In this document: positions 8,771 to 9,763 of the stretch, in pieces | Position numbering within the stretch: position 1 is the first letter of the stretch | Layout of the letters: each line of letters begins with the position of its first letter | DNA from: Podarcis tiliguerta | Taxonomy: Eukaryota | Reading direction: 5' to 3' (one strand) | Length of the DNA stretch: 64,000 bases | Assembly: GCA_965153285.1 (NCBI GenBank) | Contig: OZ229111.1 | Program-made: the position numbers and the translations under genes | The notes under the pieces: model-generated | Seen by the model: only the letters and a program-made list of their open reading frames with translations | Told to the model about the DNA's origin: nothing | Database searches by the model: none

Positions 8771-9763
8771 ATGAATAAAATTATTGTTTATGAAGAGGAA
8801 GACTTTGAGGGGTTCAGGAAAGAATTCACTTGCAGTGTTCCTGACCTACGTAGTGTAGACTTTGGGGACTGCATTTCCTCCCTTAAGGTGATTGGACAAC
8901 CTTGGCTGGTCTTCCGGGATCCCAACTATAAAGGTGTGGGTTTTGCATATGAAGAAGGTGAACATAAGCACATCCAGTTAAGTAATAACATTTCTTCTAT
9001 CCAACTAGTCACTGAGGACTTGGAAGATCCTCAGATCACACTTTATGAGCACCCTAACTATGAAGGGATAAGCAAAGTGATAAAAGAGGAAACCAACCTA
9101 AGTTATGGGTATTTCAATGACAAGGCGTCTTCCCATATTGTCCAGAAAGGTGCCTGGCTCCTCTATGAACATCCAAGGAGAGGTGGTTGGTACTATATAG
9201 CTCGAGAAGGAACGAAGCTTGATAACTATGGCCCTTTGTATCATTTCCATGATAAGTGTTCCCACGTGTATCCCCTTAAAAGTGGCCGGCCTGTTATCAC
9301 TAGCAGGATCTTATGGGACCGCATGAACTTGGAGAGTGAGAGGGATGTGATGATTGATGAGATAAATTGTATCAACACCACAGAAACAGAGCAGACGTTC
9401 ACCACCACCAGCAGTCGAACCTATGAAATATTCACAAGCCACAGCTTCAAATTAGCAGCCCCTACCCTTCAAATAAATGAGAGTTTCAATTTAAGCATAG
9501 ATCCGAGCACCAACCTGATAGTAGAAAAAGGAAAGATTGACTCTGTTACTACTGTAAACAAAATCGAGGTGACCATGCCAGCCAAGGTCCCAAAAAAATC
9601 AGAATTGAACATCCAGGTGATCATGAAGGTAGCCACGGCCTCTGTTCCTGTGGAGCTGATCATCACCAATAATGGTAAATCAAGGACGGAAAATGGGCAG
9701 TATCGTAGTGTGTCAGGACGCAACATCACCACCAAATACAGCATGAAATCAGTGAAAAATTAA
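8771..9763 (+). CDS. Epidermal differentiation-specific protein-like (EP37/EDSP; betagamma-CAT alpha-like): two beta/gamma-crystallin domains plus an aerolysin-like pore-forming domain
   Basis: Uninterrupted 330-aa ORF. Four Greek-key signatures: YEEEDFEG..ISSLKV, FRDPNYKG..ISSIQ, YEHPNYEG..ASSHIV, WLLYEHP..CSHVYP. The C-terminal half has aerolysin-family features (NTTETEQT, Ser/Thr-rich strands, AKVPKKS, SVPVEL). No signal peptide. Confidence 0.92.
   Translation: MNKIIVYEEEDFEGFRKEFTCSVPDLRSVDFGDCISSLKVIGQPWLVFRDPNYKGVGFAYEEGEHKHIQLSNNISSIQLVTEDLEDPQITLYEHPNYEGISKVIKEETNLSYGYFNDKASSHIVQKGAWLLYEHPRRGGWYYIAREGTKLDNYGPLYHFHDKCSHVYPLKSGRPVITSRILWDRMNLESERDVMIDEINCINTTETEQTFTTTSSRTYEIFTSHSFKLAAPTLQINESFNLSIDPSTNLIVEKGKIDSVTTVNKIEVTMPAKVPKKSELNIQVIMKVATASVPVELIITNNGKSRTENGQYRSVSGRNITTKYSMKSVKN

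Follow-up and report, generated by a model that had tools for sequence, protein, structure and literature searches.

To our knowledge, functional work on the endogenous aerolysin-type proteins of vertebrates has been confined almost entirely to one toad, a few fishes and a lamprey, and we know of the sauropsid members of this family from automatic annotations only. The topology in which a tandem of crystallin domains is joined to an aerolysin domain was recognised in newt EP37 by Szczesny et al. 2011 (PMC3110756), and conservation of aerolysin-family fusion proteins extends from fish to birds (PMC7995273). In the toad, the two proteins BmALP1 and BmALP3 act by disulfide exchange via a conserved C-terminal cysteine (PMC7995273, PMC10206775). 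BmALP3 was reported to be without pore-forming capacity, and inactivates BmALP1 by disulfide exchange through its C-terminal cysteine (PMC7995273). This regulatory cysteine was described as conserved from fish to reptiles and as replaced by serine in birds (PMC7995273, repeated in PMC10206775).

The window analysed here, which is the whole 64-kb stretch of lizard DNA under study and contains 0 N, carries one gene of this type. The clean 330-aa reading frame claimed for it by the first-pass annotation was recovered as an intact ATG-to-TAA ORF on the plus strand (8771-9763; Table 1); none of the window's other ORFs is as long, the second longest encoding 280 aa from a GTG start within a 74% GC island and the rest 174 aa or fewer. 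The ATG has an A at −3 and an in-frame stop upstream of it, at 8723. The two candidate CAG sites upstream of the coding sequence, ending at 8680 and 8764, suggest that a non-coding exon precedes it. No second copy or paralogue of the gene was found within the 64-kb window.

Table 1. Features of the lizard crystallin-aerolysin gene, in positions of the 64-kb window.
Feature	Position	Strand	Basis
Candidate 3' splice site of a non-coding upstream exon (polypyrimidine tract + CAG)	8656..8680	+	sequence inspection, inferred
Second candidate 3' splice site (polypyrimidine + CAG)	8742-8764	+	sequence inspection, inferred
Complete CDS, 330 codons + TAA, single coding exon	8771..9763	+	intact ATG-to-TAA ORF
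Two beta/gamma-crystallin domains, aa 3-79 and about 88-168 (four Greek keys)	8777..9274	+	Pfam, phmmer, Foldseek
Aerolysin-fold domain (predicted), aa 171-330, S/T-rich, all-beta	9281..9760	+	structural model
Pre-stem hairpin, putative membrane insertion, aa 227-251, between F226 and E252-K253-G254	9449..9523	+	alignment
Ser313 codon AGT, at the family's regulatory C-terminal Cys column	9707..9709	+	alignment
Candidate poly(A) signals 3' of the stop: ATTAAA 10316, ATTAAA 10365, AATAAA 10616	10316..10621	+	inferred from sequence

Several other features were observed elsewhere in the window. About 2 kb 3' of the gene lies an inverted repeat (11771-11941) with 78-nt arms that are 94% complementary and stand 15 nt apart. 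A search of this repeat against Rfam retrieved no hammerhead family even at E 1; the sole matches, on both strands, were miRNA-precursor look-alikes far below threshold, which any long hairpin would be expected to give. A CpG-island-like block with 74% GC (15100-15700) lies some 5.4 kb 3' of the stop codon and probably represents a neighbouring gene's promoter or first exon; the 280-aa GTG "ORF" that runs across it (14985-15827) is rich in Arg, Pro, Gly and Ala and has no Pfam match. Positions 60215-60286 (plus strand) gave an Rfam tRNA match of 32.1 bits against a gathering threshold of 29, which was not called by ARAGORN and is likely to be a tRNA-derived SINE fragment or a pseudo-tRNA.

In its N-terminal half, the protein is recognisably crystallin. 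Pfam Crystall (PF00030) matched it in two stretches (E 2.7e-24, 85.5 bits as against a cutoff of 25), and a phmmer search of PDB sequences matched betaB2-crystallin 2bb2 over residues 3-151 at E 7.6e-18. An AlphaFold2 model, built with a 73-sequence alignment as input, reached a mean pLDDT of 89.5, and Foldseek superposed it on two-domain gamma-crystallins with a TMt of about 0.85 and an rmsd of 2.3 A over 172-178 columns, so that all four Greek keys are present. The strict signature [YFW]xxxx[YFW]xG is kept in three of the four, the fourth being a degenerate variant that is common to the whole EDSP family. Both properties first ascribed to this half are thus borne out, namely the four Greek keys within aa 1-170, by the Pfam match together with the superposition, and the missing signal peptide: in the N-terminal 35 residues the top 10-residue Kyte-Doolittle mean is only 0.28, and with Greek key 1 beginning at residue 3 the first beta-strand starts the protein directly. 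A hydrophobic N-terminus was likewise absent from all EDSP family members inspected, from chimaera to echidna.

The C-terminal half had been described as Ser/Thr-rich, and indeed serine and threonine make up 23.7% of aa 171-330 versus 10.0% of aa 1-170. The first-pass annotation had staked its reading on this half modelling as an aerolysin fold, and the model bears this out. All of the top structural matches of the domain (46/46) were aerolysin-family beta pore-formers, and the best of them, BmALP3 (PDB 6lh8/6lhz), is the closest solved structure. Profile HMMs, which had been expected to recognise crystallin plus aerolysin/ETX-MTX2 domains, gave a divided answer: the crystallin part was found directly, and the aerolysin part was not, with aa 171-330 matching neither Pfam Aerolysin (PF01117) nor ETX_MTX2 (PF03318) even at E 10. 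The Bombina maxima aerolysin-like protein 6lh8 was a weak phmmer match (E 0.011). Three homologues that are 45-58% identical to the lizard protein do pass the ETX_MTX2 gathering score of 22 (newt EDSP, P0051, 28.0 bits; Amia, P0053, 32.1 bits; Emydura, P0019, 27.2 bits), and aerolysin homology therefore follows by transitivity, besides the fold. We are almost certain that the C-terminal half has an aerolysin fold. A word-indexed search with the aerolysin domain alone gave no match, which says little given the limits of the tool; exhaustive phmmer against 1.84 billion representatives gave 19 matches, none of them aerolysin-only or lectin-fused at the sequence level, the full-length ones aligning at EDSP-type positions and the others being short fragments.

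A search with the full-length protein retrieved 113 relatives. The exact 330-aa protein was absent from the protein collection searched, and the closest relative was a Lacerta agilis RefSeq entry named "epidermal differentiation-specific protein-like" (P0001; 95% identity over 330 aa). This match places the window in a lacertid. Other squamate proteins of 332-344 aa were 64-77% identical (Rhineura, Hemicordylus, Tiliqua, Elgaria, Pogona, Anolis, Sceloporus and five geckos), and a second squamate series of 352-391 aa, which includes Zootoca, Lacerta and Podarcis, was 53-54% identical; the remaining relatives came from turtles, birds, caecilians, lungfish, newts, many ray-finned fishes, coelacanth, chimaera and an echidna. 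Among the newt proteins, Cynops pyrrhogaster EDSP and EP37-A2 were matched at E 1.8e-83 and E 9.3e-86, respectively (45-47% identity, 96% coverage), and the newt founders of the family (EDSP, EP37-A2 and Gep) showed 41-47% identity to the lizard protein. The crystallin domains, the aerolysin fold and the full-length homology to newt EDSP/EP37 together bear out the EDSP/EP37/BmALP1-type architecture and family originally assigned to the gene.

The gene had also been presented as a candidate reptilian pore-forming-protein system, and here its novelty was overstated. The automatic annotation "EDSP-like" is already present in more than a dozen squamates and the family is known from fish to birds (PMC7995273), so the ORF is a further member of a known, automatically annotated family and the family in reptiles is not new. 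Our literature search found nothing linking EDSP or EP37 to squamates (lizards, snakes), in agreement with the statement that the family had seen no functional study in reptiles. No therian or human protein occurred among the 113 matches, as anticipated from the stated lack of a human counterpart.

According to a 2021 review, mammals are without a known aerolysin-domain homologue. The echidna Tachyglossus aculeatus has a protein of 342 aa annotated as EDSP-like (P0106), which is 38% identical to the lizard protein, sits on a very long branch (1.2) and has Arg at the Cys column. Monotremes may therefore be an exception to the mammalian absence, or may hold a decaying copy.

In a maximum-likelihood tree of 57 rows (LG+C20), the lizard protein falls inside an amniote clade with support of 99/98. 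Two groups stand out within it. The first, which we call clade A, is a monophyletic group of short squamate proteins (support 100/100) from 14 species, including the protein of the window, with a topology compatible with the species tree; all 14 are full length (330-344 aa). The second, clade B, unites the long-form squamate proteins with those of turtles and a bird (100/100). A single turtle protein groups as the sister of clade A, at weak support (72/52). The positions of clade A, clade B and this turtle sister in the tree indicate that the A/B duplication is older than the squamate radiation at least, and it probably predates the turtle-squamate split as well. Squamates thus carry two old EDSP paralogues, with the present gene belonging to the short clade A.

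No snake protein of clade A was seen among the 113 matches, and the only full-length snake match (Ophiophagus P0022) belongs to clade B and has kept the Cys. Clade A may have been lost in snakes.

As for the function of the protein, we lean towards the view that the ORF is the functional lacertid orthologue of the squamate-wide clade A and encodes a leaderless, soluble crystallin-aerolysin protein that, by analogy with its characterised relatives, may be a pore-former. Such a protein, having no signal peptide, would exit the cell by a non-classical route, as extrapolated from BmALP1, Dln1 and LIP; its aerolysin module would bind target membranes, the membrane-bound protein would oligomerise, and the pre-stem hairpin would then insert, giving a small beta-barrel channel. 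Taken separately, true pore formation by the lizard protein is by this analogy an evenly balanced matter, and an obligate trefoil partner would be unlikely. BmALP3, the closest solved structure, was itself reported as having no pore-forming capacity, so the aerolysin fold does not prove activity.

BmALP3 is also a precedent, as a non-pore-forming aerolysin-fold paralogue and the best structural match, for the reading that survives best beside pore formation: clade A may be a disarmed, non-lytic paralogue, in which the fold and the binding of membranes or glycans were kept and the pores were lost. It would then regulate the Cys-bearing protein of clade B or serve as its decoy, or else be a structural or secretory protein of epithelia. 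We hold this to be a real possibility, though not the probable one, and three kinds of evidence bear on it, namely the hairpin, the regulatory cysteine and the rate of evolution.

Counted between the near-invariant anchors F226 and E252-K253-G254, the pre-stem hairpin spans 24-25 residues in clade A, 26 in clade B and the echidna, 31-32 in amphibians and 30-43 in fishes. The lizard hairpin has 25 residues, with 2 prolines and about 6 charged residues, and shows the lowest pLDDT of the model (68-71). Median values are 6.5 charged residues and 2 Pro for clade A, as compared to 2 charged and 0 Pro for squamate clade B. By these alignments the clade A hairpin is the shortest, the most charged and the only Pro-bearing one in the family, which speaks for disarmament. 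However, almost every amniote sequence has a shortened hairpin, those of clade A, clade B and the echidna alike, with clade A as the extreme, and the shortening is therefore not specific to clade A. A crude count of consecutive uncharged lipid-facing rungs gave 3-4 in clade A and 5 in squamate clade B, but also 3 in turtle and bird clade B, 3-5 in amphibians and 3-9 in fishes; the clade A count, although low, overlaps the other groups down to the amphibian and fish minimum of 3 and is therefore not decisive. One strand of the lizard hairpin, L233-I243, alternates cleanly between apolar and polar residues, which counts in favour of our preferred reading.

The turtle Emydura macquarii has three members of the family (P0019, P0029 and P0045). 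One belongs to clade B and has a short hairpin; the hairpins of the two other paralogues are long and fish-like (35 and 39 residues), and the sister of clade A is one of this pair. Provided that its position in the tree is correct, amniotes shortened the hairpin on more than one occasion.

Loss of the regulatory cysteine in clade A is the second point in favour of disarmament. All 14 clade A squamates have Ser at this column, except for Thr in Sceloporus, and Ser is also found in unnamed Logan sequences of clade A and in the turtle sister. The Cys is kept in fish, amphibians, all clade B squamates, turtles and the cobra, and is Ser in birds, which belong to clade B. A tree uniting all Ser-bearing rows was rejected by an AU test (delta lnL 87.6, p 1.25e-07), in which the group was defined from the alignment column but the test was made after the first tree was seen; this rejection shows that the loss in clade A was independent of that in birds. 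Since Ser313 replaces the Cys, the disulfide-based on/off control of the toad model cannot operate in the lizard copy, which thus resembles neither BmALP1 in how it is regulated nor BmALP3 in how that protein regulates. The same replacement also weakens the disarmed reading, because BmALP3 works via the very Cys that is missing in clade A and its regulatory mode could not have been copied.

The third point is the rate of change, which is higher in clade A than in clade B, above all within the aerolysin domain. When the same eight species are compared, the mean pairwise identity of the aerolysin half is 65.4% in clade A versus 84.1% in clade B, and that of the crystallin half 74.9% versus 84.5%. 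Between the lizard protein and that of Lacerta agilis there are 15 differences, 13 of them in the 160 residues of the aerolysin half and two in the 170 residues of the crystallin half (binomial estimate for the skew, about 0.003). A faster clade A, with the change concentrated in this domain, would fit a loss of pores, and the fast aerolysin half could result from relaxed constraint or from diversifying selection. Constraint on the protein as a whole is nevertheless indicated, since the frame stayed open and the length was kept in 14 lineages since the crown squamate, an ancestor dated to about 190 My (PMC12629976), with 118 of the 330 positions invariant. The indirect case for constraint on clade A is strong, and we have little doubt, judging from the alignments, that this is a real gene under purifying selection.

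A more speculative reading, which we offer tentatively, is that the two ancient amniote paralogues have divided roles. Clade B would be a Cys-gated, BmALP1-like effector, and clade A, with its short, charged, Pro-bearing hairpin and its fast-evolving aerolysin domain, would have lost the redox switch at its origin and remodelled the hairpin, to become either an ungated, constitutive effector in an arms race or a new kind of non-lytic protein that modulates clade B with no need of disulfide exchange. If true, this would put right the general statement in the literature that reptiles retain the Cys and that birds alone have lost it. An intact gene of the family persists in lizards, in a lineage where the toad regulatory model, with its redox Cys and BmALP3, cannot operate, and a comparison of clade A with clade B within one lizard bears on what separates a pore-former from a non-lytic regulator. 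This is useful for the field and unsurprising to a specialist.

The first-pass annotation, which took the protein to be probably epithelial, had drawn an analogy with betagamma-CAT, in which the protein would be the alpha subunit of an obligate lizard trefoil complex that forms endolysosomal pores with roles in immunity and tissue repair. The architectural part of this analogy stands, BmALP1 having the same domain architecture and belonging to the same family, and trefoil factors are conserved in vertebrates (PMC7995273). For this copy the analogy is weakened in that the Cys central to redox regulation is replaced by Ser313 and that the hairpin is short, charged and Pro-bearing. Moreover, no Pfam domain was found in the other long ORFs of the 64-kb window, and so neither a trefoil factor nor an identifiable neighbour gene. 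Clade B, where the Cys is kept and evolution is slower, is a better candidate for such a role and the closer analogue of BmALP1, and we regard the complex in clade A as improbable, indeed distinctly so. That the gene is an unexpressed, neutrally evolving relic, or an artefact of assembly or annotation, is barely credible and was rejected on conservation: the 13 of 160 aerolysin-half positions that differ from Lacerta agilis are in keeping with a relic, but frame and length have been conserved since the gecko split across 14 squamate lineages, in which 118 positions are invariant, the crystallin half has only 2 of 170 positions different, and the fold prediction is confident.

Our preferred reading thus remains that of a functional clade A protein with a proposed pore-forming activity, and what the present analysis adds to a known family is the split into clades A and B, a loss of the redox Cys that happened independently of birds, and a hairpin that was remodelled. 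Among described systems, the newt proteins EDSP, EP37-A2 and Gep share the plan of two crystallin domains followed by an aerolysin domain in about 335 aa, and are leaderless as well; however, they keep the C-terminal Cys, have a Pro-free hairpin of 32 residues and pass the ETX_MTX2 gathering score, none of which holds for the lizard protein. The toad proteins BmALP1 and BmALP3 are Cys-based, whereas the lizard protein has Ser313 instead, and its identity to 6lh8 is 21-22%. Zebrafish Dln1 and lamprey LIP, which are aerolysin-like immune proteins, carry an N-terminal jacalin-type lectin in place of the crystallin domains of the lizard protein, and no sequence similarity to either was detectable by phmmer. 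Clade B (for example Zootoca vivipara XP_034962737, 378 aa) is a paralogue in the same genomes, 53-54% identical and with the same domains; its hairpin of 26 residues is about as short as that of clade A, and it has N- and C-terminal extensions that clade A does not have.
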